64,000 nucleotides of DNA from Eutreptiella sp. 'Long Island Sound 2002' (GCA_964036045.1 OZ038378.1:185504001-185568000); one strand, 5' to 3'; positions 2,760-64,000 are shown, counted from the first letter of the stretch. The notes: generated from the letters alone by a model not told the origin. Numbers and translations are program-made.

Positions 2760-3575
2760 ATGCCAGCATTGGGTCGTGCCTGGGGGTACCGCCCACTTCG
2801 CTCCGTTGCATGCACACGGGCTTGCGTGTTGCGCAATGTGCACACTGTTAATGAACAGAAACTTGCCACGTTGGAGGAGATTGCTGCAGAGCGCAGAGCC
2901 AACCGCCGATTTTTGCCGGATCCCATTCCTGACGGTCTTCTAAAGCGGTTGCTGAAGGTGGCGCAGCGTGCACCCAGTGGCTACAACCTACAACCATGGG
3001 TTGCTGTTGTGGTCTCTGCTGCGGAGCAGCGTGCAGAACTCCTTCCTGCAGCACTTGGCCAGAAACAGGTGGAGGAGGCCCCTGCCGTGGTGGTCTTTGC
3101 TGGCAACACCCGCCCAACAGAAAACATCCATAAGGCTTGGCTGCTTGGGCTGCACGCGGGTTGCTACCCCCGCTCATATGAACCCATATACTACCGCAAC
3201 ATCCGATTCATGCTGGAGACAGGGTCATGTGGAGCACTGCAGGTGTTCAAGTATGGACTGACACAAGGAATCGGGAGCATGAAACCTGCCCCCAGTGTGC
3301 CTCTGAGTATGCAAGGCTATGCCTGGAAGCAGACAATGCCGGCAGTCATGAATTTCATGAATGCTGCGACAGCTGCGGGGCTGGCCACATCTCCAATGGA
3401 GGGTATCGATGAAAATGCAGTCAAAAAGGTGGTGGGCCTGCCGGACCACTACACCGTCCCCTGTATTGTTGCTGTGGGCTATCCTCAGCCCAGCCAACGA
3501 GAGACCCCTGCTATGCCTCGGTTCCCCACTGAAGACGTTATTTTTGATGGCAAGTTTGGGGATCCGCTGCAGTAA
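2760..3575 (+). CDS. Nitroreductase family flavoprotein, intronless, 271 aa
   Basis: Family motifs RRANRRF, APSGYNLQPW and GLATSPMEGID. The Arg-rich, acid-free N-terminus resembles an organellar presequence. Confidence 0.92.
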   Translation: MPALGRAWGYRPLRSVACTRACVLRNVHTVNEQKLATLEEIAAERRANRRFLPDPIPDGLLKRLLKVAQRAPSGYNLQPWVAVVVSAAEQRAELLPAALGQKQVEEAPAVVVFAGNTRPTENIHKAWLLGLHAGCYPRSYEPIYYRNIRFMLETGSCGALQVFKYGLTQGIGSMKPAPSVPLSMQGYAWKQTMPAVMNFMNAATAAGLATSPMEGIDENAVKKVVGLPDHYTVPCIVAVGYPQPSQRETPAMPRFPTEDVIFDGKFGDPLQ

Positions 3576-4020
3576 CCCTTTTCGTGCCTGTTGGTGGTGT
3601 CGGTCTGATCGCTGATGCGGTGAGGTGTGCGCGGGACCTTCTCAGTGCCTCAGAGTGGCGATTCAAGCTTCAATGAACAGCACGGACCGAGTGGAATGGG
3701 GCATGCCGAGTTGTCATAGAAGGACGGCACAGGGTGGGGGTCGCCTTGTTCAGACACCAATGGTTTGCACCCTCTTTGACTCTGGTTGATTTCGTAGGAT
3801 CGCAACCAAGGTGCAAATGGTTATTCAGCCACTCCACCTGCCTCTTATTTTGTCGCCAGCCATCAGCTTCGCAATGCGTGTCAATGCTTCATGAGATTTG
3901 ATCCTTCCCGTTGGGCAACTGTCTACAGCCCCCAAAAGCCCCTCGCAACCTTGTTTGACACCGACAGCCCAACTTTTCATCATGTTGAAGCTCACTGTCG
4001 GCTTCAACAATGTTTGACAC

Positions 4021-20567: not shown

Positions 20568-21585
20568 ATGGAGAACAGCAGTCTCGCCAATGCAGGGACA
20601 CGCGCCAGGCATCTCACAGCCCGCATGGTTGTTGCAAAGGCCTGTGAGGCAATCGAGCTGGTGAAGGCGCATGGTACCATGCAGGATTTTGATGAACCAA
20701 AAGCTAATTTTGATGATGTTTTGATGCACTTGTAATGCGAGCTCAAAAACTCGGCGCTGGTCACTCAGGACCGGGAAATCGGTGTGGATGGTGAATGGTA
20801 CATGGGGTTTCAGCCCCCGACGTGACTGAAGTGAACTCCCCTGCCAGGGAGTGTAACGCCCACTGTTACGCGTCTGGGGGTTGGGGGTAGTTGAGAACTC
20901 GAGTGCTCAAGTAACCCTGTACTCGAGGCGCGCCGTGTGCGACCTGGGGTAAGCCCCTCCCTCACTCTCGTCCCAACGACCGGTGTGGGTGAGAACCAGC
21001 TCCCGGATCGAATGGCGTGCTGTTGCCCGCCCCCATGGTTAAACTTGCCGTGGGTTGTTCACCAATCACCCGCTTCTTGCTGTCCGGTGGGCGAGAGAGG
21101 GGTGGGGGTCAGGTACTACCAAGGTTCGCAATTTCGTAATTCATTTCAATGGCTGAAACCAGCCCAACGTGCAAGTTCTGCCATCATCGCTGCGCCTGTT
21201 TGTTGGGTATTTGAGCACGATGGAATGGATTGCCCCTCAGGTATTCGTGGGTGGGACTTCAGATCAAGCGGGTCCAAGCCATTGAGAGTGTGAAGGCCTT
21301 GGAGGAGCTGGTGCAGTCGCAGGCTGAGGTGAAGCAGCAGTCGCAGGCAGCCCAGCAGGCCGCCAAACAGGCAAAAGCCAAGCCGAAGCCTGCGGCGGCT
21401 CAGAAGAGAGAGCCAGAGGAAGACGCAGCGGTGGACTCCGCCTCATCCTCCTCCTCCTCCAACGAGGTGCCCCCGCTTGCAGCAGCGGAGGGCGTGGCGA
21501 CACTGCCAGCTGCAGCCGCACGCCCGAAAGGGCGTGAATGGCCTGGCGCACAGAGGAACCGCCCGCCTCCACTCAGGAAGGATGG

Positions 21586-21632
<47 letters not shown>

Positions 21633-25265: not shown

Positions 25266-26647
25266 GTCTGACTTCTGGGACCGCGGCCGTGCTTGCGCAA
25301 GGGGGGGGGGGGGTACATCTTCCCGGGAAGCCCTGACTTGCCGCAGCAGCAGCAAACCATGCACTGAGGTGTGCGTACAATGTTTTCGGGCTGCCGTTTG
25401 CAGTTGCAGTGAAGCCCTGGTGGTCCGCCTTTTGAGCGTGAGCCGAAGCGCAAAGTACGGGTCAAGCTCCGAGCAGCGCCTCCAGGTCAAGGTCAAAAGG
25501 AGAGGGGAGACTTGAAGAGGGGGAGGGATGTGGGTTCCGTGTTGGTGTCGACGTGTGTCTCTGGCCCGAAGGGAAAGGAAGTGAATGGCCATATCCACAG
25601 CCTCGTTGAAGGCACAAGGGGAAGCGCACGGAGCCCCCCCCCCTGAAGAAAGTAGGGATTCTCGTGTCGAAGGTGGATGATTGTAGTGGCTCACGGCGGA
25701 TATTTGGTCGATCGAGGGTGCTCCCTGGGTCTGGCTTTTCCTGCGATTGTGGAAGGGGCGGATGGGAGCGTATGATTTCCCTCTCCTGCTGCACGGGATC
25801 GAAGGGCTCAACTCGGCTCAGCCCCCCACCCCCCAGGTCTTATCCCTGACATAAGAATCTAAGCACTGGACAGCAGTTGCATCACACGGTGCCCAACGAG
25901 CCTTTATTATGGAACACCCCCAGGGCTAGACCATGGGCTCGGGTTTCGTTGGAACCGCCGCCTGGCACCTGGCACCACTGCGTGGACACCAGGGAAGCAC
26001 GTGGCCATGGGTTCCTTTCTCTGGCAATGCTAACCCTCACCCTGACCTATCAGGGGTTTCAGTCATTATATACCAGCAGCAGATCAGTGCCCCAATATCA
26101 GTACCCCGACATCAGTGCCCCTGCATCAGTTCCAGTGTAGACAACGGCTTCTTTTCCAACAATTTTTGGAATAATGGGTTTTATTCGGAATAGAAGTGGA
26201 TGTCAGCTGTCTTGCTAGCGCTGTTCCTCATGTAGCTCTGCACTGTTCCTAAGCTATTCCTAAAAATCCTTACACTGTTCCTACACTGTTTCTATGTACA
26301 TTTTGGTGTACCCGTCATGCTGACCTTGTGTGCATTGTGATACAGGGGGGCACAGTGCATTTGAATCATAGTGCTCTGTGTCATCTGTGGGTCCAGGATG
26401 CATTCTCTACCATGACATGTCTCATCATGCGTGTACCAAGTGTAAAGAAATCTTTGCACTGTTCCTACGATGGTTGAAACAGCGCTAACAAGACAGCTGA
26501 CGCATGTATTAATTGTGGTGTGGCATAAGTTGGTGGTTCAGAAAGGTATTTTTTCTATTCTGCATGTCCGGGCTGTTTGAACAGGTGCGTGCACCAGCCC
26601 CCAAGCGGTCTTTTTTCGCGTACAGTTTGATGATTTGGGTGTTCACC

Positions 26648-26721
26648 TTATTGGAATCCAGGACCAGGGTCTCGAGCTGGGGGGGGGCACTTTATTGGAA
26701 TCCAGGACCAGGGTCTCGAGC
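26648..26721 (+). repeat. 30-bp direct repeat, each copy followed by a G-tract
   Basis: TTATTGGAATCCAGGACCAGGGTCTCGAGC at 26648 and 26692. Confidence 0.95.
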
Positions 26722-29700
26722 GGGGGGGGGGGGGTTACATTTTCATTTCTGAAGGGGTATTTGCACTGCCCGTTACATGACATCTGGAGTACACACTGCT
26801 GGTGGCAAAGGGTCCAGATTCCAGCCTCGGTTGAAGGGATGCTATCCACAACAACTGTCATGATGGATGGGTTGCTAGCTTCATGGAAGCGTCCACGGGA
26901 TCACTCCAGTCATCGCTGCACCCATGATCAGCACATCATCATGAGCAGCACAGAACTGCGCAGCTGAACGTTGCCTTGAAATGGGGTACAAAAGAAAGTC
27001 AGCCCTGCAGGGAGCAAGCAAAGTATACCATCCCATGGGAAGCAGAAGGACAAGCCCGAGTATTATGGTAGCCAAGGTTCGGCGGTTTGTGGACCTGATT
27101 CCCCCCTTCTCCCATCCCTCTGGCCCTGTGCTACATTTCCTGCGTCAGTGCTAGTGAACACCCTCCAGACTTGACTGTCACGGGAATGGCTGAATGTGAA
27201 GCATGCCGGCGGCGGCATGGGATGGACACCAACGGGCAGAAGCAGCCTTTGTGAGCAGAGGGACAACTGTCCCGTTCTCACCGAAAAAAAATTCCCCACT
27301 GGTGGCTGCGGACAAGCAAAGTAGACAATTCCTGAAAACCCCAAACCAGTGTGTATACCCGTTGGTACCAACCGGCATGTCTTCTCATTTTTGCATGCCC
27401 ATCTGCAGAGCACGCCCCCCCCGCCCCCGCCCCCACCCTTCAATCTCTGCCCTCACCCTCACTGCTGTTCCGAGTGGCTTGCGGAGCTCGATTGGATAGA
27501 AGCGTCTCTGGCGGAGACGTGGGTTCTGAAGGGGTACACGCAAGTCTCTCGTGGAGCTTGCACTGACCTTCAAAGGCTTTGCTGGGCGCCCCCTGCCACA
27601 AGCCCTGCAAGCCAAGTATACGGGAACCGGCATGTTCCTTCAGAAAAGGTATGCTTGTTGAGGCTCGCCTCTCAATAACCACTGGCACCAACCTGAGGAC
27701 CAAGAGGGCACGACTGAGGGGAAAGTGCGTGGGGTGTCGATCATAGGCTGCAGGCAGGAACTGGGCTCCGGCATCCTCTGTTCCAAATTTTGATTCCGCC
27801 CCCCCCTCCCCCCAGGTCCCCTCTACTACTGCCTTCCCGGCACCCCGTGGCGGGCAAAGAGGGGTGTGCAGGGGTTGCATCGAGCGCCTCCCATGTGCTG
27901 TGGGCATTTGAGAAGGAAGAGGTATTGCATCGACGATTGGAGGTATTGGTCGGGGTGGTGGTGAGATCTGCAAGAAGTGTTGGTTCAGGACCTTATGACG
28001 TACAATTTGACCAAGCTGGCTTGCCTTCTGCTGTGGACTCCTGTTCCCAGTTCTGTTTGAGAGGGTGGTTGACAGACAGACGGGGATGGGGGCATCTGAG
28101 TGGCAGAATAGATGTCGCTGACTTCCATGTTAAAACCGTTGAGATCCTGATTTGTGGCCCCCCTTGCCCTTGCGTAAGTACGGCTACTTACCCCGTCTGA
28201 CTGTTTTCTTTCTGGCCGCAACTTTTGTGGTCCACATGGCGCATAACATTATTCTGCCTGAGATTGCAACCTACTTCTCTTTGTTCCGACGTGACCGTCA
28301 GCAAATGGTGTTGCAATCGCTTTGAATCCCCCCAAGCACCGCTTGCCTGCGGATCGTGCATAAGCACGGCGTTGTCCAAGCCTGACACCCCTGTCTGACC
28401 ATCAGTTTCCCTAACTTCGGCCATGCTTTCACATTGCTAGACATTGCTTTTGGTTCGTTCTATTTGACAGAGGGAGAAGAGAGAGGGTGGGAAAGGGATG
28501 ATGGAGGGATGGCGGGTGGGGCAGAGGTCCGCAGCTTCCTTTCTGCCACTATTTTGTCCACGCCACGTCAGAATCTAAGACCCCCTTGGGGTCGGAGGTT
28601 CATGTCCAGATTTTATGACAGCACTGCAGCAGGCGAAACATGCTGGTTTGGCTGGCGGCCATTGTACTCCTTTCTCTTGCACCGACGCACATCCCCTTTT
28701 GGTTGGGCACAGGATGGCCTGAAAACTCATGGAAAATGTGTACCGCAGTGACGTGTGTGCCTTCTGTTCAAGCATAAAGCAAGGAGTCTGGGATCGGTTC
28801 ATGCCATTTTGTTAATATTGTTCACTGGTAGCTCTTGGCCTGTGCATATTTTGGGCTGGTTGGTGGTTTCGAGGTTGGTTATGGAAGGAAAGCATATCGA
28901 GGAGCGTAGCCCATGGGCCAGGTGGCACATGTCCTCCCCAAGGCTTTCCACATGGATGACGAGCGCAGAAGGACTGCCATCCAGCCAGTAGAGCAAGAGG
29001 CTCCCCCTGATACTGCTAAGGCGTGCTCACCGGCCGCTTGCCCACGGCTGTTTTCCGGGCATGCTATTCGTGCTCTAGTTCCAGCTGTGCCGGAATCTTA
29101 TAGGATTTCACGCCCACATCCAAACACGCATGGCGCTTCAGCTCGGTGGTTCAGGAACCAACGGAACTACATACAACTCCTCTTCTGGAGGATCTGATTG
29201 CTGTTTTTCAAACAAAGAGTCCATTTTCAGGGGATGTCAAGACACAAACACATCCTCCCCCCTAGATGTGGCCAACAACGGCTCCGATGATGGGGCCTTG
29301 CTGTGCCAGCTGGAGGTGACCGCCAGGGACCAGGGCATAGCCATTGTCTCTGTCCCCTCCAAGGGGGGCTGCAAACATGGGGTTAGCGTCATATCCACAA
29401 CTAGGTCAGACCTCGGGGGTGGAGGTGGTTGTTTGGTCCAACCTGGCGGTGGAGGTTGTGGGTGCAACAGTAGAGGGGTGGGTAACGCCCCCCCCTTTGC
29501 ATGCGGTGTGTGAATCTGCTGTAGCAACTGCACTACACCAGGTAGCACCACCATTTGTGCTGGGGCCAGGATGGGGGGGAGGGGCTGCTGGCGATGAAGT
29601 CTGCTTGGCCTACGGCGTGTGCAGCACTGGACTCTTGTTGTGCCGTTGGGCGTGACCAACCCAAACTTTTGGAGATACAACAGCGCGCTGTTGGTCATCA

Positions 29701-32676: not shown

Positions 32677-35600
32677 ATGGGGCTGCCACTGCGGAGGGTG
32701 TGGTGGCTATGTATGGCAGTTTTGCTTTCTACATGCCAAAGTCAAGTATCGGATATCTCTTCATATGTAGTGGCTCACAACAAGAGACGGTGCCTTCATG
32801 ATGTCCGCGGCCTAATATGGTCAAGTGGGGTCGCAACATCGGCACAACGGCATGCAAGCAAGTGCCTATTCCAGCACACAGCCAACCCCGTCTATGGCGA
32901 GAACCTTTGGGCTGGGTGGTATGATCCCTCTGCAGAAGAGGTGCTGAAAGGGTGGTATGACAATGAAATTGGCCTATACTCGTACAGCAGCCCTGGCTTC
33001 AGCAGCGCAACGGGGCATTTCACGCAAGTAGTTTGGAAATCAACAAGCGAATTAGGTTGTGGCATATGTGACGGTGGAGGCCTTACTTACCCCTATGTGG
33101 TGACATGTCAATACAACGGCTTTGGGAATGTTGGCGGACAGTTTGCCAGCAACGTCCTGCCAGTCAGCAGAACCCCTTCGCAGTGCACCAATATCAATTG
33201 TGGCACCCCAAGCCAAACGGGCTTCGACTTCACCGGCTGTACCAACACATTCCCTGGGGTTTGCAATCCAACGTGTCGACCGGGTTACTGGAGCTATCCC
33301 TACGTGTCTGCCACATGTCTGCCTTCCGGAGAATGGGCGTATCAGGGCACTTGCACGGCCTTCACTTGTGGAAGTCCCAACCACCCCGACCCAAACGTGG
33401 ATTTGAGCACTTGTATGGACACCTCTGGTATGGCCTACGAGGGCACATGCCGCCCCACGTGCAAGCCCGGGTTTAGTGGGAGCCCCACCGCCGTGTGCGG
33501 TGTAGATGCCCAGTGGACGTATGGTGGTTCTTGTAGTGGAGGGGGGCCCACCCCATCCCCAAGCCCAAGCGCAGCCTCTGAATCCCCGAGCCCTAGCCCG
33601 TCTGCCAGCCCGGCCAGCCCGTCTGCCAGCCCATCCCCCAGCCCAAGCCCAGCCACCCCTTCTCCCAGCCCACCGTCAAGCCCTTCCCCAAGCCCTTCCC
33701 CAAGCTACCCTCCATCGCCGAAGGCCAGCCCCAGCCCCAGCCCCAGCCCTGCCAGCCCCAGCCCCAGCCCCAGCCCCAGCCCCCTCGTCAGCCCCAGCCC
33801 CAGCCCCATCCCAAGCCCCAGCGCAAGCCCCAGTCCCAGCCCAGTGGGCCCCCAACTCCCGTACACCGCTATCCCCGCGGTGGACGCGCCGCAGCTCAAC
33901 AACCCACTTGGCAAAATCGTCTACGGTCCCAAGACTATCGACCCCGACTGCCAGGGGGCATTTGGGGACATGGTGCCAGTGAAGTGCTGCACGCAGATGC
34001 CGCACACGGCAGCGGACTTCCGCGACCGAGGGCAGTGCACCGCGTACGATGCGAACTACGAGTTCTCCGGGTTCCTCATGAACTGTTCCGGCGGCAACTT
34101 CACGTGGGGCAACTGCGATGGCAACTGCGACTGCAATGTCACGAAGGTGGCCCCTGCGCGGTCGTGCATGCTGCTGGAGCACACGTACTTCACCTCCGCA
34201 TTCGTGCGGTTCTCAACGTGCGACGGGCAGTTCGCCCCCGCCCCAGGCCCCCAGGCCAGCAACCCCCAGGGCAGCATCATCGCGACCCCCGTGGGTGTCA
34301 ACCAGACCCTCGACCCGGACTGCGCGGCGGCTCCCGGGGCCACAGTCCCGGCGAAGTGCTGCCTGGTCACTGCCGGGGAAACGTGGCTCGATTTGAACGG
34401 TGTCGGGACCTGCGTCACGCCAGACCCCACCCTCCCGGGGCTGAATCTGGGCCTCACCTGCGCCAATGACGTGTTCCTGTTGGGCGACATGTGCAGCGAC
34501 GCCACCTGCGGCGCCTGCGCTGGCGTGCACCGCGTGCCCGGCCCCGCCTGCGTGGCCCTCACCGGCGTGACTGGCTACGCCCTCTTCGCGAAGCTCGAGT
34601 CGTGCCCCGGCACCTGCAGCCCCTTCGCCCCCACGTCTGCCGCGTGCCAACTGCTGACCGCCAACTCGCTCGCCAACCCCCAGTCGTTCTTTACGGAGCA
34701 GTTCACGGGGGCTGGCAGTGTCCCGGACGCCGTCCTGCAGTCGGTCCTGGCAAGCGTCAACACGACGATGGTGTACAGGGACCCGCTGACGGAGTCCGTG
34801 ATGGCGGTGCTTTCGGCGCAGGACCCGAGCACGACGCCGCTGCAGCGCAGCAACACGAGCACGTTCACGGCGGTGGTCCGGCCGCAGTCCGAGACGGAGG
34901 TCGTGGGCGTGTTCGCCAAGACCGACGCGCGCATCGGGGTCCCGATGCCGCAGCTGCTGATGACGGACGTGCTCCGCGTGGACCGCTTCGACGCCAGCCA
35001 GGCCTCGGTGACCGACCAGCCCTACACGTTCTCCGTGTACGTCCCCGACGTGCTCCACCTGGACGTCATGCGGTACCCCACCCGCGGCAGTGGCGGGCGG
35101 CGCAGCGTGGTCGCCGAGGGCGGCTCCGTCCTGCCGTGGGGCTCGGGCTGGTGGAACGTCACGGCCGTCGGGACGTCCCTGTTCGCCGGCGTCAACGCCG
35201 CCACCAACTTCTCCGTGGCGCTGTTCCCGGTCACGCGTGGGAGTGTGGCACGCGTGACCATCACCTTCCAGACCTCCGCCCCGGAGTTCATGGGCAACCA
35301 GATCGCCGTGGAGCTGCCGGACGGGTTTACGCCGCACCGCTGCGGCCAGGGCTTCACGGCGTGCGCCACGCAGAGCACCATCCTCCTGGTCGATACCAAT
35401 ACGACGGTGTCCCATCGGCTCGTCACCGATGGCCATGAGCTGTCGCTGCAGCTCGACGCCAACTTGACCATCAACGGCTCCGTCCAGTTCACCTTCACGA
35501 ACGTCCTCCTGCCGAACCACTGCGACGAGGCCGAGTACTCGCTGCGGGGCCAGTCCTGCTCCTTCGACGCGTGGGGGGCGAAGTCCTGCGAGGCACGGCC

Positions 35601-35784
35601 CATGGTGCGGCGGGTGAGCTACAAGCCTCCGTTGCCCACGGACGCCGTGTTCAACGACGGCGTGCCCCAAGGCTGCGACGTCTGCAGCGCGTGCAAGGCC
35701 CACCCGGCGGGCCACTGGGAATGCGAGCACGATGGCCTCCGGTTCTTGTCTCCCAATCCTGGCAATGGCGTCTGCATGGCTTAG
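32677..35784 (+). CDS. Secreted CAP/SCP (PR-1-like) protein with two Sushi-like modules, a Ser-Pro repeat linker and two Cys-rich repeats; intronless, 1035 aa
   Basis: Hydrophobic signal-like N-terminus; CAP motifs HNKRR, YGENL, TGHFTQVVW and CQY..FGN. Two C..P...C...C.P.C.PG....C...W...C modules, (SP)n, and duplicated T.DPDC......VP.KCC units. No obvious C-terminal TM. Confidence 0.93.
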   Translation: MGLPLRRVWWLCMAVLLSTCQSQVSDISSYVVAHNKRRCLHDVRGLIWSSGVATSAQRHASKCLFQHTANPVYGENLWAGWYDPSAEEVLKGWYDNEIGLYSYSSPGFSSATGHFTQVVWKSTSELGCGICDGGGLTYPYVVTCQYNGFGNVGGQFASNVLPVSRTPSQCTNINCGTPSQTGFDFTGCTNTFPGVCNPTCRPGYWSYPYVSATCLPSGEWAYQGTCTAFTCGSPNHPDPNVDLSTCMDTSGMAYEGTCRPTCKPGFSGSPTAVCGVDAQWTYGGSCSGGGPTPSPSPSAASESPSPSPSASPASPSASPSPSPSPATPSPSPPSSPSPSPSPSYPPSPKASPSPSPSPASPSPSPSPSPLVSPSPSPIPSPSASPSPSPVGPQLPYTAIPAVDAPQLNNPLGKIVYGPKTIDPDCQGAFGDMVPVKCCTQMPHTAADFRDRGQCTAYDANYEFSGFLMNCSGGNFTWGNCDGNCDCNVTKVAPARSCMLLEHTYFTSAFVRFSTCDGQFAPAPGPQASNPQGSIIATPVGVNQTLDPDCAAAPGATVPAKCCLVTAGETWLDLNGVGTCVTPDPTLPGLNLGLTCANDVFLLGDMCSDATCGACAGVHRVPGPACVALTGVTGYALFAKLESCPGTCSPFAPTSAACQLLTANSLANPQSFFTEQFTGAGSVPDAVLQSVLASVNTTMVYRDPLTESVMAVLSAQDPSTTPLQRSNTSTFTAVVRPQSETEVVGVFAKTDARIGVPMPQLLMTDVLRVDRFDASQASVTDQPYTFSVYVPDVLHLDVMRYPTRGSGGRRSVVAEGGSVLPWGSGWWNVTAVGTSLFAGVNAATNFSVALFPVTRGSVARVTITFQTSAPEFMGNQIAVELPDGFTPHRCGQGFTACATQSTILLVDTNTTVSHRLVTDGHELSLQLDANLTINGSVQFTFTNVLLPNHCDEAEYSLRGQSCSFDAWGAKSCEARPMVRRVSYKPPLPTDAVFNDGVPQGCDVCSACKAHPAGHWECEHDGLRFLSPNPGNGVCMA

Positions 35785-41654: not shown

Positions 41655-44600
41655 ATGTCTTGTTGTGGACCCAAAGTTGAGCAGGAAACGACTTGTTGTG
41701 CACCCAAAGTTGAGCAGTCTTGTTGTGCAAGCCAGCCGGAGGTCTCAAAGAGTGACACATTGGAGTTGGTGAAGGATTACTATGGCAAGGTGCTGAACAC
41801 AACGAAAGACCTGAAAACGTCAGGTGTGCTGATGCGAAGCTATGGCGTGCTGAAGTCAGATGGGGAGGTTATCGGGACTTGTCCATTGTGATGTCACGTT
41901 ATCGTGAATATCGTCCCTCTGAACTAATTGGAACTTTGTGCAGCCCATGCCGATTTTCCATGGGTGCCTGGGGGTGTTGTGGAAGCGCGGGTGGACGTAC
42001 TCTACTTATCAGTCCACTCATCACCAGCGCATTGGCCCCCTGTAAGCGAGGTCACAGTGCTCCCATTGTGTTCTGGGACTGGGGCTGTGCTTGGGCAAGG
42101 AGGCGGGGGAGGGGCTGAGATCAAGGCCTGCAGTCTCAGTTCAAAGGTCCAAAGTACACCAGTGGATCAGCCACTGGAGAGGACGCGAGGGGGCGGGCAA
42201 ACCGAGAGGCTGTTCGCACAACTGTGCAAAGGCAAGTGTAGGTCTAGTGCAATATTTGTGCGGCATCAATACAGTAACACCAACGCATCCTGAGTACAAC
42301 ATCCGGTGTTTTGGTTGGTTGCATGAACTGCGGCAGAGGCAGAGACAGCGGCGGAGAGGCAGGCAGAGAGACAGGCAGAGAGGTACAGACAGAGGCAGAG
42401 AGGCAGAGAGGCCAAGAGGCAGAGCTTCGCCCCCATCGTTCCGCAGCCTGTTGCGCTGCTGACCGGCCTCCGAGGTACATCATGGATGCCTTGAAGAAAG
42501 TACCGCAGGAGATCCAAGATAAATTCTACGGGTGCGGCAGTCCTATACCCGCGGAGTTGACCGGACTGACCGTACTGGATCTGGGTTGCGGCGCCGGCAG
42601 GGACTGCTACATCGCTGCAAGTTTGGTGGGGCCCACTGGAAAGGTGATCGGTGTTGACATGACGGATGAGCAGTTGGATGTGGCGAAGAAGCATGCGGTG
42701 TGCAGTGTCCCGGCACAGGCTTCAGGGAACTCTTGGGAGCTGGCTCGCACACACTCTCTCACTCGATCCCCCTCTTCTCTCAACCCTCCCCCCACCTCTC
42801 TCTCCCCCATGCACCAAAAGTGGGAGCGGGGAACGGCCCACATGGGCAACATACGGCAAGAAGGGGCCGCGGCTCCTGCGGAGCGAGGACCCGGGTGGGC
42901 CCAAGGAGCGACCAACGGCGACCCCGGCGACGAGCAGGCGACCGAGCGGCGCGCGTCACGCTCGAAACACAGACGTGGTTCTTGCGATCTACAGCGTGTG
43001 ACGTTAGTCCTGCCGCCCGTGGCCTACAGCCTAAGGGCTTCCAGGCCTAGCGCTTGGGTATCACGGCAGCCACTCCACTCCAACCCCCTTCGCTTTCTCT
43101 GTCACTCTGGCCCAAGTCTCTCCCCTCTCTCTCATTCTCTCCCGCTGCCTCCCACTCTCTCCCAATCCTCTTCTCAGTCTTACTCAGCCAGCCCCACTCT
43201 TGTATGCGGACAAATAGTGACGGACGCACATGACATCTCGCAAGTCCCCCAAATGTTGTCCTCGTGCATTCCCTCCAACGCCCACCAGCAGTGGATGCAT
43301 GTTCATGCATATTCTCAGCTACCCTGAAAGGGTTGATGCATTATCACAAATTCTCCTCATTACCGACCAATGCTGCACAGATCCTCAGGCATACTCTGAA
43401 TTGCACAGTTCCAGTGGATGCATACACATGCATCCTCTCAGATACCACACACGTTGTCATATCACAAACGGTTGATGCCTCGACCTGCAGCGTGGCCCTG
43501 CAACGAACAGGGGCTCAATGTGCGGTACTGATCGGCTGAATGTCCCCCCGAAAGACAAGTCCAGCCATTCGTTCTTGATTGTGACTTGCTACCAAATACC
43601 CAAAGCACTTTGATTGCACCCGCTGCTTCAGCGTAATGCATAGACCTCGAGTTTTGTCACGGCGGTGGGTCTGGGCCACCGGCGGGAGGTCCGGTGACGG
43701 ATGGTGGGGGGTCTGCACAGTCAGCACAGCCGACCCCTCCCCCTCTGGGCACGAACCCCCCCCCCCCCCCCGCCTCTGGGTTGGCAGGGGGTGCATGCCC
43801 TCGTCAGTACCTACAACTCCTGCATGCGTTGCCACGTCTTCCACAGGCTGAGTTCTGCACCAAAACCTTGGCCTACCCTTCGTCTGTGTTCGATTTCAAG
43901 AAAGGATACATTGAGGCTGTGCAGGATACCGGGATCCCCCAAAACAGTGTGGACCTCATCATGAGCAACTGTGTGATCAACCTGTCACCAGACAAAGAGG
44001 CAGTGATCAATGGTTTGTGTAAGCCATGGCGGGGGAGGCTCGCATTGCAAAGTGTTGATGATTGCCAAACCCGTCTGTTAATCGTGGCGTGTCTTGGCAT
44101 TGGGACACTCCGTGTCATGCTGCACGATGGGGCACTGCATGTGCGGCGGCATGATGGCGTGTGAGGGCGCACGACGGGGCACTGTGTGTGAGGCGGCATG
44201 ACGGGGCACGGCATGTGATCGCACTGCATGCAACACTACACGCCGCGGCTGCCTCATGCTCGTCCTCTCTTTACCGCAGCTACGCTTCTGCTCTTTCAAA
44301 CGCTGTTTCGCTTTGCAGGTGCTGCGGCCGTTCTGAAACAGGGTGGCGAAATGTATTTCAGTGATGTGTATGCGGACCGGCGGTTGCCAGAGGATGTTCG
44401 AAAGCATGAAGTGCTGTGGGGCGAGTGCATCTCTGGTGCACTGTACACCGAGGTATGCACCAGACTTTGTTTTTAAGGAATTAATACAAAGCGGGGGGGG
44501 TGTCTGGGTGGGTCCCACAAAGGGCCGCTTATTCAAATTTGATTTTTCCTCAGCCAAATTTCGGGTCAAGATTTTTTTTTTTGGGTGGGTGGGTGAGCCA

Positions 44601-55073: not shown

Positions 55074-57758
55074 GTGTCCTGTGTGTCCTCAGGGCAGGCA
55101 GGGACAAGATTGGAGGTGAAGGTATGAACTAGGTATTGGTTAGTGCTTCCTCACCCCCGGATGTAAACAGCAGGACAGTGCCTTGTGCTCCTGGGATGTC
55201 CAGTATGTGATCTGCAGGATGCATGACTTCCGAGGACACCTTGTACTTGGTAGCTGTCCAGACCCAGTCAGCCCCCCCAACAACGGGCACACTTACTCAG
55301 CGTTTAAGGCAGGCCGGCAGACGTCTGGGTGCAGGTGACGGTGATGCCGAGGGCGAGGGCGCGGGTGACGACGAGAGTTATGGCGATAATTCTGCTAAGG
55401 GTTGGATACCGGTTTCATGATGGATGATGTCAAAAGTTTGGGGCATAAGAAGAGCTGTGGTAATCCTCCCCTTTCCATTCTGGTTGAAATTGACTGGTCC
55501 GAAATTGTATTGTACCTTGCATAGTGCATTGAGGAAACCGTCACTTGCACATTTTTCTCGGATGGTGCAACAGTACACACTGTGCCATCTTCGTCACATA
55601 TCTCCTGTTCCTTCCCGTCAGTGATTGCGTCATCAATGCATGCATGTGGCCTGTCCAGTATGCAGGCACAGCGATGCACCTATTCTGTGTCCCCTTGTGC
55701 ATTTTCCCCTTGTGCATACACACCGTGTGCTCTGAGACTCTGGATTCGATGTCAAGGTTTCTTTTCTGACAGACTGTCGAGTAGATTGCAGTCCTTGGCT
55801 TTATCTCCTTGCCCTTATGAGACTGCACTCCTGTCTGGCGGTCGTAATGCAACTGCATGACACTCATCCGCCTTTGAGCCAATCGACTCCAGAGTCAGCA
55901 TCTGCAAGACGCTCTTACAAACAGGGTCATCCTGCTGGAGGCTCCTCCATCTGGCGGTCCGTTTGTCAGTTTGAGCCATTTGGCTTGATCTCCAAAAGTG
56001 CTTGTATCTGTACTCTGCCTTCCGGCTTTCCCGTGCTGTGCGCAAATTCAGCCGTTTTGGACCCTCCGATCTCCCGCACTACAGGGCACTGCTGGCGGTC
56101 ATGGGTCCTCCTGTGTGCCGTTTTGTATCGTTCATTGGCAGCGTTTGGCCCGTGCCTGTGGGGGTTTGGGGGGGTTGGGGGTTTTGAGGTTGGTTCCGGT
56201 AACGTCACCCCGATAAAGGGCGTGGTGTGTGCGGCTGTGTGCCCAAACATCCTCCAGGAAAACCACAGTGCACTACATCATCCCGTCGGGCAGTAACGGC
56301 GGTCTCCAGAGGCCTCCAAGGGACAGCATATTGAGAGGCTCAGTGGGGAGACCATTGGTTTTTGGTCTGCAATGCACGCGCGGTGGGGATACTCCCTCTT
56401 GGGCCCTGGAGCCCCCCCCCCACATCTCCTGTCTTTCAAGTATATGTCTGCCCTTCACCCAGTTGAATGGGTTGCCCCAGGGCTTTTAACAACTCCGCAT
56501 TACTGGGGAGCCCCCCCCCCCCCCCCCCTTGAACCCCCCCCCCCTCTTTAAAAGATTGGCCCAAAATTTCCTGTGTGCCTTCGGCCGATTAAAAACTTTT
56601 TCTCTGGTGCCTTTGGCACCAATTAGTTTAGACCAAAAATTTTCTTCGGTGCCTCTCAACACTCAGCACCACTTAGGGGAGGTGGGGTGGGGGTGGGGGG
56701 CTGGACCCACCCCCCCGAGCCCCCCTGGATCCCCCCCCCCCCCCCCACTAATAAAAGCAGCCCTGGGGTGCACCCCATCGTGTGTTGGGGGGCGGGGGGG
56801 CTTCACTTGTTACATTCTTAGACGAACCAGGTGTCCACCCAAAATGGGCCCCTGTCACCGGAAAGTGGACCAAAAAAGGGACGTGTCACACGGTGCGAAA
56901 AACACGGTTAAAGAACATGAAGCCAATCCCGGGAAAGAAGAAATGTCCTAAAAAGACAGTGGTTGTGCAAGTACATGAGCAGTTGTGTACCACCGTGTTA
57001 CCACGCGCATGCATATATGCACTTCAGTGTGTTTCATTTGAATTGCTGCATGTTGTTTGTTGTTCGATCAGCAAAGAGACGCAGGGAAGTTCACAATGTA
57101 GGCAGGAAGTCTCATGTATCGAAACTTCGGTTGCACGATTAGCTACATCAAACTGTTTGTCCACCCGACTCCTGATAGTCTGTGTATGTGAAAATTAGAA
57201 TGAAAAACCAATGATGCTATCGAAATTTCGATTGTCGAAGCTACGTGACAATTTGCCTTGCATGGATCAATCGAAATTTCGATTGGAAGTCTTTAACGAC
57301 ATTCAGAGAGCAAACCATGAAAATCCTTCACGAAGGTTTACCGGAACATAGTTGTACTACAGTAGTATATGAATTTTAAATTACAACTTTGTAGAAAAAT
57401 AAAGGTAAAAGAAATAAGAGGTAAAATAAATCAAACACATATGAATGTTTTATCCGATGGAGATGTCTACACAATCGATTTATTTCTAAAACCAATCGAA
57501 ATTTCGATAGGAGCATCTCGAATCAAAATTTTGATAGGAGCATTCGACAGAAAAGGAATTCAATTCCTATCGAAATTTCGATAGGAATGTCCAATCGAAA
57601 TTTAGATAGCCGCTAAAGGAATAACTACCCTGTAAAGCATAGGCTGTTTAAACTGCAATCGAATTTTCGATAGTGACAGTCTGACAGATTTCAAAGATTT
57701 TAAATGCTAGACTATTTGTTGTCTTCTACTTCATGTACGAGTTTCATGTACGCCAAAG

Positions 57759-59852
57759 ATGGATGGCCATGTCATTGCCTACGTGCGAGGATTCCTCGCT
57801 TCGCACTCTTGGGAGAATGGACGCCAAATTATTGAAGATGCTTGTGAAGGCGGTACGTCAAGGCGATTTGTTGAATTTGTCCTTGGAATAAGGATAACCA
57901 AACACCGCCGCCAGACATTTGAGCAGGTGGTTGCAAACAGAAACTGTAACCTTTGCCCAGATGGCTCAGCGTACTCCAGCAGGAGCTCTTCAACATCTGG
58001 CGTGTGCTGCACCTGCGTGCGGCACCCCTCGCTTTTCGCCCGGCTCTGGATATTACTGTTTCGCAGCGCGAACGGAAGTTACTCGCAAGGTTTGGCATAG
58101 TTCCACCTCGAATACCGACTCTGCAGGAATCTGGTGTTGCAGCAGCGATGGACCTCTGGAATGCAATGAGCATTGCTTCGGTTGGCATTTGGATGGACAA
58201 TTTTTTCAGAAAACGATTCCTCCAGAACCCCGATGGACCGCCCGGACATCTTGACTATTCTGCCGTAGCCGTGCTCTTTACAATCTTGCTGCCCCGATTT
58301 CCTGGACATCTCACATTGCGCCGCATAGTTTTCAGACTGCCAGGTGTCATGAGATGCATTCGGACCTCCATCAGGGGTCTACTGAACACTATTGCAGCTG
58401 TTACGGATGGGACGTTACAGGCACATTTCATCCGTGCGCCACTCGACATCGCCAGAGGTATCGTGCATCCACAAATTTGGAACCCTATGCTGCTGGACGA
58501 GTGTCGAACAAGCACAAACACTGAGCTGCTGCAGTTAATTGAGATGATGCGTCGCATACAGATTCATACGGGCCGGGATTTGCCTTTGCTGGTCGACATG
58601 AAAATACATGCATCGGTGTTGCGTTTCATTTACGGTGCGAAGCTCAGAAGTCTTGACTACCGGTCACATTTGGAACGCATTCCACTGCTTTATGGCATTT
58701 GGCATCCGTACAAATACTGTGTACACATTACTTTCAGGCGTTTCTTTCCCGTTATTTCTTGGCTGCTGAAACCGTTTATCACGGTGCGGACTAGCAATCT
58801 CTTGTCATCGGAAGCTCATATACATGGAAAAGGTTTTTGCCGGTCTTTTGTTAGCGGGCAACGTGTTGAAAGGTCTTATCACCGAAGCTACAGATAGATT
58901 GTCGACCCTCAGACGACCAATGAATCTTGAAAACACTGTGGCATATCAAAAGATTCAGTCCCTGTACAGTCTGTTGTATGTTTTCACACCTGCACTCTGG
59001 GCCATTGGGTATGGGGTTCGAGAATGTACCTGGGCCGGGGCTGCTCTGGATTCTGGGAAGACCGCACGCACTGTTCTTGAACATTGTCTGCTTTTACTGG
59101 TCTCCCTTACACAAAAGCATGCTCCCAAGATAGAGTATGTTCGGACCTTATGCACTGCACCCGGTACATGGCAGTTATGGTATGACATGGTTCCTGGTTG
59201 TCTGTTCGTTGAGGAAAGTTGTGAAGCCTCTTTGTCACGTTTGGGACATGCTCTCACCCTGCTGCCACACGTCACAGATCTTTCTCGCGCAAGTGATGTT
59301 TACTGCACCCTTCCCCCCTTGCAGAAAGAACGGGTTCTCAGATCTTCGGTCCAGCCACATCTGGTTACACATTTTGTTATTACGATACGTTCATTTGTTC
59401 AACGGGCTGCGGATATCAACACGCCGTTCACACGGTTCCAGACCAAACACAGGACAGTTACACCTGATCCTGTATGGGATCCCAGTTACCTTCCTCCACT
59501 TGACTTAACTGTTGATTCACCCTTACTTGATATGTGCATGATTCGGGCTCTCAAGTTAATGTGCAAACACAGAGATGTCACAGAGGGAATCCATCAATAT
59601 ATGACCCACATTCCTAGAACACCTCTTGCTGATCGTGTTTCCTATGTGAAAGCTTGGAAAAAACTACAGACAACACGGTCGCTTGAAGCACATCCCCCTC
59701 CGGACAGATACCAGGGACGCCTTCGTAGACAGCCACGAGGCCCGCCTCCTGCCCTCTTTGACCCGCCATCCAGCGAGAGCGAACCTGATGAGGACGACGA
59801 ACATATAGTTGATGAGGCCAAAGGTCCGCGGCTTCTTGCCGCTGAACATTGA
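57759..59852 (+). pseudogene. DDE-type transposase-like gene (Academ/DUF6589-like) broken by two frameshifts (about 57950 and about 58800)
   Basis: Three overlapping ORFs (57759, 57953, 58824) join into one product. Ordered motifs: WMDNF (D 58196), PLLVD (D 58595), YGIWH (58694-58705) and EESCE (59211-59225). Family call is by recalled motif pattern only. Confidence 0.55.
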
Positions 59853-60319
59853 GATTTGAGTCGCTTATCGAAATTTCGATTGCGCGTTTGTTTGTTGCAA
59901 TTTCAGTGCGTAAGTACTTGATCGAATCCTTTCATCATGTAATACCCACTCTTTGCTTGGTCCAATGCTCCTTCGATCTATTTTATGCATATCGGATCTA
60001 TTTCATCTCCTTCGAAGTCTATGTAAACCTGATCAGACAACGTTTCTCGGTACCTCGTCTGCGGTCTATCGAAATTTCGATAGACCACTTCCGCAATCGA
60101 AATTTCGATTGCATTTACGAGATTTGGACTCTAAGTTGGACGTAACCGATGAATCTGAGCTTATCGCTTCACATTTAGAGGTACTGAAAAACCTTCACAG
60201 AAATATTCGGTCTCACAAGCAAAGTAGCACTTTCGTCGCCCCAATCGTCCATTTGCAAGTTCCTCAGCTCGTTTGCGCACAGGTTTTACCTCGTTAATCA
60301 CCCTCAGTACATTTACCCA

Positions 60320-63251
60320 ATGTCCGGTGAGTCCCATTTGTCACCGAAGAAGCGGATCAAGAAGAAGAAGCGGTCGCAGCCGGCAGGGGACTCTGATGAG
60401 CCTCCATCTCAAACGTATTCGCAGTCAACGGACACTGCAAGCCCCCGAACGGATACTTCCGAGGCTGCGCTTTTCTCTCAGTCCCCTCCACCGAAGAAGA
60501 AGAAGAAGATCGTTGCAGAGCAGAGCAGACCAGCGACATCCGCAGAGGTTGAGGAATGGCACGATACTTCTCAGGTCTATCTCGACGAATGGGTTGAGTC
60601 CCGAGAACTTGTTCATTACTCGAAGATCGAACTGGACCGCGACATGAGCTTCGGTCAAACAAGAACGGTTACTACCAAGAAGAAAGCGTTGGTTGGTGAT
60701 GACATCCTTGCTGCTCCACCACCGAAGGACAAATACATCGAATGTTTACTCTTTCCAACAGGTGTACCTTGCTATCGAAATTTCGATTGATTGCCGTGCT
60801 GCGTTACGGACGATTACATCGTACCTTCTATCGAAATTTCGATTGTACGATTCCTCGTCAGGCGCTACATTGAAGTGTCTCGGTGGACAACATGCTTTCG
60901 AATGGACCCAGGATGTACGAAAGAAGTACGAAGAAGAAGGCAAGACACCGCCTCATTGGACAAGGATGTACGACGGGTTGATTTTGAGTGCGGACACACC
61001 CTTTTGGATTCGACAAACCCTCGCTGGGCATCACAACCGGGCATCCCATGGCGGATCTGAGCATACGTTTGAGCAACGACTCCATCGCCTGTTCACCGAG
61101 TGTCACCTCAAAGGTCTTTATCGAAATTTCGATAGCGGGTCCACTTCGGGTAACATTACGTCACCAATTCTTTCCTTATTATCTATGCAGGAGTACCTAC
61201 CCCAAAGGCCGCAACGCTGACAATGATGCACAAGACCGGATACACTGCCGTGCACGGCACAGACGAAGAAGTTGCAAAGCGATGGACGGTTCTTGCAAGT
61301 TTCGTTTCCCAAGTTGAGGACAAAGCGATCATTCCGAAACTCGTCGAGCTTCAGGGGAAGGACGAGTTGAACCCGGTGTTCAACAACTACAAGCCGCTTG
61401 AGGGATTGTATCCGCCGGAGATTGCGCAGGTAGTTACTTTCTTTGCATCATTCTTATTTAAAACAACACAGTCATCTTCGGACATATCTTCACAGGTCTG
61501 TGAAAGGCTGCTGGAAGGAGGTCTGACGCCACCATTGCTTAAGACCTTCGTTCGGAGACTTCGGGAGCAGCGAACTTGTTCTTGGCATTTGGAACATCCG
61601 GACAACCCCTTCGTGCACGAGTCTCGGAAAAACTTTGCGGAGTGGAAGAGAATAACGTCATCACTGTCACCCCAGGATTTCAAGGTGCATATCCCGCGCT
61701 GGAAGTGGACCGAACAGCATCCTTTGCCGCCTTGGACGACCATCAGCAAGGCCCCCATCTGGTCTGATGAGGATTTCAAGACCCTCCGCGAATCCCTCAG
61801 TCAACCGAAGGTGAAGCCTGTGATCAAAAGTACGTCGGCAGAATGTCTGACAGTAACGCTTGGTGAAACCAAACCCGGAGAGGCAGTCTGTGAAGTCCGC
61901 ACCGGGCCAGCTGTCGGTGCAACCCCTGCTGCAATCTCTGGACTGAAACCGAGGATTCTCGTCTATCAGATTCCGAAGGGTACCGCTGCGGGACGCCCCC
62001 TGTGTCCAATGATGTTGTCTTACGTCCTTGATGAGGAGTTGATGCCCGTTCTGCTGTTGGTTGGAGATCGTCCTGACGTCCGCGTTGTTCTGAACGCCAT
62101 CTCTGCGTCAACGGATGATGAGTTCTATACCAGGGACATCGCGTTGTACAATAAAGGGATTTTGACCAGCAATTACACCATGGCAACTTCCCAGCTCGTT
62201 GTCTTGACATTGCGCCATATCAAAGAATGGAAGGTGTGTTCTATCGAAATTTCGATAGCGTCGCTTTGCGTACTTCCTCCTATCGAAATTTCAATTGTTT
62301 TTCTTTTAGCCCCCGAGGTACATTACCTTCGAAGACGAGCGGTACAACAATCCGGCCGAAGATGACAATCGACTCCCTCCAGAGATTCTCGGCTGCATCA
62401 TGCATCAACTCAAATTGGATGTTATCGAAGAAAGCGTCAACGAGATCTGGGTTGCGGTTCAGACTACATCTCCCGTTCTGGTGAGCAACATCCGGCTTCG
62501 TCTCCGTTCTCACGTTAACGTTGCCGTTCTTCTTGGTTTGTCAACGGCTCCAAGCAAAGAACAATTGACGAAGTTTGCTGATGATGGTATGTTGCAAGGC
62601 CTCCCTTCCTGCGCTAGTACAATCAACTCCTCCACTCATTTTTTCCGCTTTTTCTTACAGTTTCAGCTGGCCTTCAAAGGGTACAGGCCCTACCACCGAT
62701 CCAATGGGATCTTGTTCTCGACAGAATGAAGCGGGGTTATCCCCTTGAGGCTCCTGACACTGACGAAGGTATGCATTGAAAGACACCTCATCAAATTTGT
62801 CTTGTTCCTCTCCTTCACTATTTGTTCTGCCACAGATTCTTCGGACGATGACGAAGACAAGGACACAGTCAAGGGTCAAGCGAAGGCAGCGAAGGACGCT
62901 GAGAAAAAAGTCAGCAAGGCCTTGACGAAAGAAGAGAAAAAAGCGGCTGCTCAGGAGAAAGTATGTCTGTTTATATCTACATATCTGCCTCGATGTTTTA
63001 TTTTCTTTAATCATTCTTTCACCCTTCCTCTGCAGAAGGAATCCGAAAAGGCGGCGAAGGAAGCAGCAAAGCAGGCGGCAAAAGAATCGGCGAAAGGTAA
63101 GAAAGAAGGAGCACAGAAGGAAAAAGAGAAGAAGAAGTCTGCTTTTGCTGATTTTCAGGCCAAGTTGTCGAAGGCTGCTACGGATCAGCCCAAGAAGAAG
63201 GGCTCGCCCCACAAGGATTCTCATCCGAGTCGGGCTACCACCAAGAAGTAA
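60320..63251 (+). CDS. Uncharacterised nuclear-like protein of the palindrome element; exons 60320-60761, 60862-61113, 61191-62233 (probable extra in-frame intron 61430-61495), 62310-62586, 62661-62768, 62836-62960, 63036-63251 (820 or 798 aa)
   Basis: Six GT-AG introns of 67-100 nt with pyrimidine tracts and matching phases link the separate ORFs into one frame (2463 nt). NLS-like KKRIKKKKR and PKKKKK; K/E/A-rich tail. Confidence 0.8.
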
Positions 63252-64000
63252 TCGAGCATATGTCATATTTCTAGTCTCCGTTTTTTATTTCTCCTGGTGA
63301 TATGTTGTTGCTTTCTCTATCGAAATTTCGATAGAAACCTTGTTTCGATGACCACCGATGCTGTGTTTTCGTCAATCGAAATTTCGATTGGCCCCCGCCC
63401 GTCAGATTTTTATGTTTTAATCCTATCGAGATTTCGATAGGCATCGACGACAGATTCCTTTCTATATTATGCTATCGAAATTTCGATAGCATCTTGCCCG
63501 GAGTAATATGTCTTTCACTGCTGAAAGGCTCATCGTTACTTGAAGTGAGCACTCCTTGAGCTGCTCGGCACAATCACCGAGTACACAGATGGCATCATTT
63601 GAAAGAGATCATCAGAAATTGTCCTTATTCGTTTTGGCCCTATGCTCTGCGTGCCTGTTTTGCGTGTGACGTTTATGCGTTGTCAATAACTGTCAGGTTT
63701 CTACGAGGTTTTTAAAATGTTTTCAATTGTCCATCTCAATTTTCCCCTCTACCCTACCCCCTACAAATCAGCTATGTCCCCTACCCCCGATTTCGAGGTT
63801 CTCCCACCACATTTCTTCCCTTCCCATAGTAAATACCCCACTTTTGACTATTGTTTTTCGGCTACGTTTTTCCTCAGTTTGTGTCTCACGGACCGGAAAT
63901 CGAGGTAAAATTTTTTGTTACTTCAAATTTCGGTGCTGTAGCTCGACTTTTTTCGGTTCGCCTGTCACGATTTAGATAGCCGGAGGCAGGTTTTCCGGGT

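Follow-up and report, generated by a model that had tools for sequence, protein, structure and literature searches.

A two-gene DNA transposon of Eutreptiella with lineage-specific palindromes outside its exons, candidate binding sites for an element-encoded dimeric protein

The window analyzed here, a stretch of 64,000 nucleotides from Eutreptiella sp. 'Long Island Sound 2002' (GCA_964036045.1 OZ038378.1:185504001-185568000), ends in one copy of a cut-and-paste DNA transposon with terminal inverted repeats (TIRs). This element, referred to below as copy A, occupies window positions 56817-64020 (7,204 bp) and carries a transposase gene (gene 1), a second gene downstream of it (gene 2) and 20 copies of a short palindrome. 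A preliminary description, drawn up from the sequence of the window alone, had proposed a mobile two-gene element and had taken the cluster of palindromes as its extent. The TIRs, the target-site duplications and a second copy elsewhere (copy B) establish the element as mobile and as carrying two genes, while the cluster turned out to fall short of its ends by approximately 300 bp on the left and approximately 530 bp on the right. The features of the element are as follows; contig L006, which corresponds to window positions 51223-72365, extends the sequence beyond the window end.

56812-56816, no strand: left copy of the target-site duplication, ACATT (5 bp), from the two-copy comparison; the right copy, at 64021-64025, lies past the window end
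56817-56840, plus strand: left TIR, 24 bp, CTTAGACGAACCAGGTGTCCACCC, at whose first base homology with copy B starts
57116-57673, no strand: upstream cluster of eight palindromes (four perfect, four variant), ending 85 bp before the gene 1 ATG
57759-59852, plus strand: gene 1, a DDE transposase of an unnamed family, delimited from open reading frames (ORFs) in three frames and their alignment to the contiguous ORFs of contig L008 and of copy B
59865-60111, no strand: intergenic cluster of three perfect palindromes, the first starting 12 bp after the gene 1 stop codon
60320-63251, plus strand: gene 2, eight exons, 798 amino acids; in the spliced model all introns are GT-AG and the reading frame stays open, without internal stop
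60320-60761, 60862-61113, 61191-61429 and 61496-62233, plus strand: exons 1 to 4 of the spliced gene 2 model
62310-62586, 62661-62768, 62836-62960 and 63036-63251, plus strand: exons 5 to 8 of the same model
60762-60861, plus strand: gene 2 intron 1, 100 nt long; two perfect palindromes (60772-60789, 60828-60845)
61114-61190, plus strand: gene 2 intron 2, 77 nt long; one perfect palindrome (61118-61135), separated from the 5' splice site by 4 nt
62234-62309, plus strand: gene 2 intron 4, 76 nt long; one perfect palindrome (62241-62258) and one that differs by a CpG-to-CpA change (62280-62297)
63317-63489, no strand: downstream cluster of four palindromes, three of them perfect; it begins 66 bp beyond the stop codon of gene 2
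63997-64000, minus strand: first four bases of the right TIR, which reaches 64020, 20 bases past the window end, and was read from L006 (12775-12798)

The ends of the element were defined by comparison with copy B, which is located on another contig (1.85 Mb) of the same ENA assembly (ERZ25074135) and was found by a protein search with the C-terminal ORF of gene 1. In an alignment of the two loci, copies A and B are 97 to 98% identical from window position 56815 to 64025, and the sequences outside are unrelated. Aligning element copies had been proposed in the preliminary description as a way to find the TIRs and target-site duplications, and it gave both, with lengths of 24 bp and 5 bp, respectively; the left TIR and the reverse complement of the right end agree at 22 of 24 positions. 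Three insertions, namely, copies A and B and a related element (element C) within which copy B is nested, have 5-bp duplications of different sequence (ACATT, AATTT and TTGTG, respectively) in unrelated flanks, and all three have the termini 5'-CTTAG...CTAAG-3'. At 90% identity, the longest ORF of gene 2 clusters into a group of 37 sequence variants, which are spread over many contigs of 0.5 to 2.1 Mb, and the element is therefore a dispersed multicopy repeat. Both copies that we read are defective: when compared with copy B, copy A shows single-base indels at 57948 and 58795, exactly where the frame of its transposase gene breaks, and copy B has a 1,800-bp deletion (59103-60902) that fuses the two genes. 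The window copy is probably nonautonomous. TIRs, target duplications with differing flanks and a DDE transposase with an RNase-H-like fold are together the hallmarks of a class II TIR transposon, and as such the element is of a known kind. An origin as a giant virus or episome was rejected on the basis of the spliceosomal introns (66 to 100 nt, GT-AG), the TIRs with target duplications and the many dispersed copies; the introns also identify the DNA as eukaryotic.

A search of the window for ATCGAAATTTCGAT returned 14 exact copies and, with up to two mismatches allowed, 20 copies (6 variants), all within positions 57118-63487, whereas dinucleotide shuffles led us to expect 0.00 and 0.10 matches, respectively. 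Half-site strings are equally confined, with CGAAATTTCG occurring 14 times beyond 57 kb and not once before. The palindrome was found, by the exact and the two-mismatch search, neither in the remaining 57 kb of the window nor in the 8.3 kb of L006 past the window end. These counts agree, down to the coordinates, with those given in the preliminary description and tie the palindromes to the element and not to the genome at large; a genome-wide palindromic microelement was rejected as well, with 0 copies in 65 kb of flanking DNA. The sequence of the 14-bp palindrome reported there was likewise borne out, but the conserved unit is longer: an 18-bp palindrome, CWATCGAAATTTCGATWG, of the form C-W-ATCGAAATTTCGAT-W-G. 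Among the variants, the one at 57522-57535 (ATCAAAATTTTGAT) is changed on both arms and is still palindromic, both of its CpGs having decayed, to CpA and TpG, while those at 57594 and 62282 have changes on a single arm that break the pairing without compensation. Three of the eight base changes in the variant palindromes (window 57522-57535 and 62282-62295) are CpG-to-TpG or CpG-to-CpA transitions, which hints at methylation of the CpGs in the palindromes. Beyond the genome itself, a scan for the motif pair in a public collection of viral DNA returned nothing, and in a metagenome collection it returned four contigs (L001 to L004), of which L002 is AT rich, of low complexity and without an array, and the other three were also taken as chance matches. 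Rfam had no match on the entire window, rRNA and tRNA families included.

The 20 copies are distributed over all noncoding compartments around the two genes: 8 upstream of gene 1, 3 between the genes, 5 in introns 1, 2 and 4 of gene 2, and 4 after gene 2, the last four being spaced 49 to 56 bp apart. The upstream cluster includes a 27-bp tandem duplication at 57494-57547. Coding sequence, as computed from gene 1 (57759-59852) and the eight-exon model of gene 2, makes up 70% of the 6,370-bp span of the cluster, yet not one copy falls in it, an outcome with a probability of approximately 2.5e-11 under random placement. Two observations made earlier from the sequence, that the palindromes avoid the exons of this element and that some sit inside three introns, therefore both stand. 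Between copies A and B, 2 of 270 palindrome positions and 48 of 1,876 positions in other noncoding DNA have changed, which is weak evidence (P=0.08) for conservation of the palindromes.

Gene 1, which had been called transposase-like, belongs to a large family with conserved D/D/E residues and a predicted RNase-H-like fold. The window copy contains no intron and no palindrome and is disrupted by the two 1-bp frameshifts mentioned above (near 57948 and 58795). A profile search with its core against 1.84 billion representative proteins yielded 810 clusters at E<=1e-3, of which 155 also passed E<=1e-30, and full-length members are 650 to 840 amino acids long. All members with a visible source come from metagenome collections or Logan assemblies, none of these from NCBI or UniRef, and they are unnamed or described as 'hypothetical protein'. 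Among 30 aligned full-length members, the invariant residues include D164-N165, D309, G342-W344-H345 and E516/E517/E520; conserved positions between D309 and E516 comprise Y321, P338, G342, W344, H345, Y347, K348, E387, L434, P440, G446, V449, R450, W454, Y491, R493, L499 and W502. An AlphaFold (AF2) model of the transposase (predicted local distance difference test score [pLDDT] 78.9; predicted template modeling score [pTM] 0.75) puts D164 in strand 1 and D309 immediately past strand 4; the glutamates E516/E517/E520 lie where a helix starts and are preceded by a large helical insertion. In this model, the D/D/E residues fit the catalytic triad of an RNase-H fold. A Foldseek comparison of the model with the PDB gave no match at E<=0.001; chains of the hAT transposase Hermes headed the list, at E 2.8e-3 to 3.4e-2 and with probabilities of at most 0.97, the P-element transposase (TM-score 0.40 on the target) and RAG1 came lower, amid unrelated low-probability matches, and Transib was at rank 39 (probability 0.07). 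Against viral structures, Foldseek found nothing meaningful for the model, and neither a sequence search nor two profile searches of PDB sequences gave significant matches. Pfam had no match for the gene 1 ORF pieces of the window or for 10 full-length members (nothing at E<=0.1 beyond noise). On the strength of the modeled fold, we conclude that the product of gene 1 is a DDE transposase that belongs, structurally, to the class having an insertion domain. We cannot place it in a named superfamily. With neither a Pfam model nor an entry in a named database, the family is probably missed by routine repeat annotation of protists.

The DNA around 10 members of the gene 1 family was compared, and eight lineages had enough flanking sequence to be inspected. 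All eight carry a palindrome of their own, 16 to 22 bp long and present in 8 to 35 copies:

Element A (the window element): CTATCGAAATTTCGATAG
Element C: CTGGCCGAAATTTCGGCCAG, 12 to 14 copies
L008: TTTGCGTA-NN-TACGCAAA, approximately 20 copies
L009: TTCGCTCCATGGAGCGAA, 11 copies
L010: TGTCCGCGAA-NN-TTCGCGGACA (core CCGCGAA-NN-TTCGCGG), at least 9 copies
L011: TTTGTTCGCGATCGCGAACAAA, 8 copies
L015: TTTGCGTAATTACGCAAA, 17 perfect copies, 35 with mismatches
L016: TTATGCGCA-NN-TGCGCATAA, 23 perfect copies, 24 with mismatches

In contrast, eight 7-kb chunks of host DNA from the window and shuffled loci, used as controls, never contained more than one copy of any such palindrome. The eight lineages thus have seven different arm sequences and one common design, and the structure of the element and this family-wide pattern are secure. 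Co-occurrence of the window motif itself with homologues of both genes, which the preliminary description had suggested as a check, was not what we found: homologous elements carry other palindromes of the same size, symmetry and placement. They lie upstream of the transposase gene, between the genes, between the exons of gene 2 and downstream of gene 2; a cluster just upstream of the transposase start codon is present in eight of eight lineages, and in six of these the last copy lies 70 to 110 bp before the ATG. Transposase identity across the lineages ranges from 27 to 75%. At its upper end, L008 and L015 (75% identical) have the same palindrome arms (TTGCGTA-NN-TACGCAA), while at approximately 50% identity (L010, L015 and L016) the arms already differ. 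The TIRs, on the other hand, stay alike across elements A, C and L016 (CT..G.CG...CA...TG.CCACC), those of L016 being perfect 24-bp repeats with CTCGGG...CCCGAG termini and no clean target duplication. Since the TIRs are conserved while the palindromes differ, we suggest that recognition of the ends falls to the conserved transposase and that of the palindromes to something faster evolving.

Element C (L007, 5235-17176) has perfect 25-bp TIRs (CTTAGGCGTCACAAGTTGCCCACCC), the TTGTG duplication, a transposase gene of its own, the ORF of which is also fragmented, and a homologue of gene 2. Copy B is inserted between the transposase gene of element C and the conserved part of its gene 2 homologue, and the A/B and C lineages therefore coexist, with different palindromes, within one genome. 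A third, fragmentary transposase homologue from this family lies approximately 2.3 kb from element C (L007:19500-20368, minus strand). On contig L013, which represents a distant lineage, the palindrome (TTCTTACGAAC-CCA-GTTCGTAAGAA; 191-207 and 2860-2876) resembles the outermost TIR bases of the window element (CTTAGACGAACC); the TIR tip may represent the half-site of an ancestral palindrome, or the likeness could be due to chance. Introns differ between these relatives as well. In L008, approximately 600 nt with five palindromes (3009-3623) interrupt the transposase gene; the ends of this insert share an 11-bp inverted repeat (TAGGCTTCT.C), and it is possibly a GT...AG intron. At the same place in L015 (2815-2830), the transposase of which is 75% identical, the coding sequence is uninterrupted, and L016 has a different intron of approximately 250 nt, with three palindromes, at another position. 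As judged from these sequences, palindrome-bearing introns appear to be gained or lost between close relatives.

Gene 2 is the constant companion of the transposase gene. Iterative local searches identified homologues of its core (approximately residues 130 to 660) downstream of the transposase gene in element C, L008, L009, L015 and L016, so that the pair is kept in all six elements with enough downstream sequence. The predicted protein has basic, nuclear-localization-like runs at the N terminus and a tail rich in K, E and A, and its ORF pieces have no match in Pfam. L008, L015 and L016 share the motif (Y/F)xxxSGQHRxxAA, which in elements A and C is represented by LGGQH; from its sequence, we treat the likeness of this motif to the GxxR box of ParB/Srx-fold proteins as a lead. 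The SGQHR lineages gave weak matches to three PHROG families of 'ParB-like partition protein' (E 0.0025 to 0.12) and a weak one to Pfam ParB_N (E 0.32; its score of 11.5 bits is below the cutoff of 26.3). The ParB idea found no backing in NCBIfam, in a profile search of PDB sequences, in phage sequences searched with tblastn or in a bacterial genome scan, all of which came back empty. An AF2 model of the partial domain (pLDDT 60.7), with Foldseek matches at the level of noise, was too poor to put the idea to a test. In every element, the candidate ParB-like domain is split by an intron.

From these patterns, we infer that the palindromes are lineage-specific sites for a dimeric DNA-binding protein encoded by the element, a reading to which we assign a probability of roughly 0.6. 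A two-fold-symmetric dimer encoded by the element family, either the product of gene 2 or a variable part of the transposase, would bind the approximately 20 palindromes. Each lineage would evolve a palindrome of its own, by which the element might be marked as 'self', and the bound sites might assemble or condense the element for transposition, as the subterminal repeats of En/Spm and Ac do, and/or control the element's own promoters. Sites would accumulate, in part by tandem duplication, in intergenic DNA and introns because they are tolerated only where coding is undisturbed. The proposal made in the preliminary description, cis-acting sites for a dimeric element-encoded protein, is thus partly supported: the private palindromes, two of them in one genome, favor it over host-factor sites, while binding and a role in transposition, regulation or both are put forward as a proposal. 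Recognition by a symmetric dimer, as opposed to a hairpin, is favored by the W positions and by the variants. The two W positions, which are limited to A or T, are complementary in 10 of 19 cases against 9.9 expected, i.e., they do not covary. The free 2-nt centers between the arms in L008 and L016 fit a loop or a spacer between half-sites alike.

Several observations weigh against this reading. Neither gene product contains a confidently recognized DNA-binding domain (Pfam was empty for both), the ParB-like signal of gene 2 consists of one motif of approximately 20 amino acids (E 0.0025 to 0.3), and the window's own gene 2 (GGQHAFEW) has no ParB match. The family-wide pattern is drawn from only eight lineages, and on short contigs with 220 to 350 nt upstream of the transposase gene, L012 and L014 have no palindromes and L013 has two copies. 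Exon avoidance in the relatives is strong but not absolute, with several having one copy within the transposase coding sequence. In known transposons with end recognition, sites are not spread through central introns as they are here. Part of the copy number may be neutral expansion, given the tandem arrays, and the frameshifted transposase gene of the window copy permits no statement on current activity. Finally, the palindromes are perfect inverted repeats that, as RNA, would form stems of 7 to 8 bp with 4-nt loops at -6.6 to -13.9 kcal/mol.

The last point leads to the alternative, already raised in the preliminary description, that the palindromes act as hairpins, be it in the RNA leader, introns and trailer or as DNA cruciforms, that influence splicing or the formation of 3' ends, or that supply a small-RNA pathway. 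All 20 copies do lie in noncoding parts of, or beside, both genes, which may be transcribed, and in the three introns the first copy lies 4 to 10 nt after the 5' splice site; the variable 2-nt center in L008 and L016 looks like a loop, and the variant at 57522 kept its palindrome with both arms altered. However, selection on structure alone would not keep approximately 20 copies, or each lineage, to a single sequence, the W positions show no covariation, and the single-arm variants at 57594 and 62282 break the pairing uncompensated. The double change at 57522, moreover, is CpG decay, in which symmetry is kept by chance half of the time. We therefore consider hairpins unlikely. We find it harder still to believe that the palindromes are sites of a host transcription factor, collected as promoter or enhancer elements to drive expression of the element. 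Intronic enhancers do occur in eukaryotes, and clusters are found just upstream of both genes, with the last copy at a similar distance before the transposase ATG in most lineages. Host DNA around the element nevertheless contains no copies (57 kb plus 8 kb), and a host factor is hard to reconcile with two lineages in one nucleus that use different palindromes; seven arm sequences of one design in eight lineages are better explained by a single, fast-evolving reader borne by the element.

A different kind of objection is that the palindromes have no function at all and were spread by slippage, tandem duplication or hairpin-mediated repair, surviving outside exons. Tandem arrays of fixed period (27 bp in A, 28 bp in L015, and 69 to 71 bp in C and L009, besides the period of 49 to 56 bp) are what such a process would leave behind, and simple purifying selection predicts the avoidance of exons. 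It would not account for a design (16 to 22 bp, symmetry, 8 to 35 copies, placement) that persists at 27 to 75% transposase identity while the sequence turns over, and the arrays are only part of the picture: isolated copies in separate introns and spacers belong to no tandem array, and the palindromes inside arrays are kept while the spacers between them drift. This explanation, too, strikes us as very improbable, and sites private to each lineage for an element-encoded dimer remain our preferred reading.

Precedents for such an arrangement exist in part. Both En/Spm (a CACTA element, with TnpA) and Ac (hAT) contain, like our element, many short motifs within a TIR transposon, in those cases subterminal repeats recognized by a protein that the element encodes and that is separate from the catalytic step; these motifs overlap the promoter, contain CpG and occur in both orientations. 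They are, however, asymmetric and 6 to 12 bp long, whereas full palindromes of 18 to 22 bp are found here; they lie within approximately 200 to 300 bp of the ends, whereas here the outermost sites are approximately 300 and 530 bp inside and others are in central introns; and the termini and duplications (CACTA; 3 or 8 bp) differ from the CTTAG termini and 5-bp duplication of our element. Pfam found no match to Transposase_21/24 or to the hAT dimerization domain in the window ORFs or in 10 family members. For the superfamilies without Pfam models (Kolobok, Sola, Zator, Novosib, Dada and Academ), duplication lengths of 3, 4 and 6 to 8 bp would also differ from ours, which we take as a lead. The 5-bp duplication fits only Transib or the hAT5 group. 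Elements of the CACTA/En-Spm and CMCT clade, including Transib, have 5'-CA...TG-3' termini and duplications of 2 to 5 bp, and the CACTA-Transib clade is defined by conserved C(2)C / H(3-4)H motifs (PMC12730594). Our element lacks CA...TG termini, and only its 5-bp duplication would fit; the 30-sequence alignment contains no invariant or nearly invariant cysteine, and H345 is the sole histidine in such columns. As for hAT, the duplication is unlike the typical 8 bp and compatible with hAT5 families, for which 5-bp duplications are known (PMC12730594, citing Repbase Reports 2007). Hermes is also the best structural match, albeit below significance (E 2.8e-3; TM-score 0.2 to 0.3), and neither a C-terminal dimerization domain (PF05699) nor a BED finger was found by Pfam in 10 full-length members.

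The two-gene layout recalls PIF/Harbinger, in which a DDE transposase is accompanied by a second conserved, element-encoded protein, a partner that supplies DNA recognition according to one report (10.64898/2026.05.26.728016). Only this layout is common to both: Pfam recognizes no DDE_Tnp_4, Myb, SANT or MADF domain here, the duplication is 5 bp and not the 3-bp TWA, and the modeled transposase, for which the best matches are Hermes, the P element and RAG1, has the kind of fold that includes a large helical insertion. The presence of palindrome-bearing introns in one element and not in its close relative is reminiscent of introner elements, the intron-generating transposons of protists. The introns here, however, have only palindromes in common and no element body, and in the DNA that we have seen the palindromes are confined to the parent element. 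The palindrome arrays, finally, resemble parS, where several palindromes of approximately 16 bp mark one DNA molecule for a dimeric reader, ParB; in our case there is no ParA partner, the host is eukaryotic and the carrier is a transposon.

In searches of the topical literature, we found no published description of this palindrome and two-gene layout. What is unusual about the element is its large, unnamed transposase family without a Pfam model, its conserved partner gene and, above all, the element-wide, lineage-specific palindromes, introns included. One might speculate further that the elements form an undescribed group at the level of a superfamily, in which a ParB-like partner loads onto 10 to 35 private, parS-like palindromes distributed across the entire element, including its introns, as a code for self-recognition and condensation and palindrome segments give rise to new introns; we regard this combination as unlikely.

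The element is surrounded by ordinary gene-bearing DNA, as indicated by ORFs with recognizable host-gene domains: a nitroreductase (2760-3575), a Schlafen AlbA_2 domain (21230-22279), a CAP domain followed by proline-rich repeats (32677-35784) and a class I methyltransferase (42311-43327). A 630-amino-acid ORF at 17636-19528 contains long GAG (glutamate) runs and tandem repeats of 87 to 126 bp and has no Pfam match. Just left of the element, at 56385-56764, lie several C runs (10 to 20 C) and G-rich blocks in a repeated GGAGCCCC... pattern, and similar runs of G or C occur elsewhere in the window (e.g., 26644-26731). Outside the elements, L006:20394-20958 (equivalent to window 71616-72180) and L007:3377-4305 share a repeat, 79 to 95% identical, that probably represents a different dispersed repeat of the genome.

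If the palindromes are indeed private sites, the family would provide a natural series of rapidly diverged, matched protein-DNA specificities, two of which coexist in one genome, and would make it testable how related transposons within one genome avoid cross-mobilizing or cross-regulating one another. The transposase family, with its hundreds of clusters, is invisible to Pfam and to named databases, and the presence or absence of palindrome-bearing introns in close relatives bears on the question of how introns are gained.

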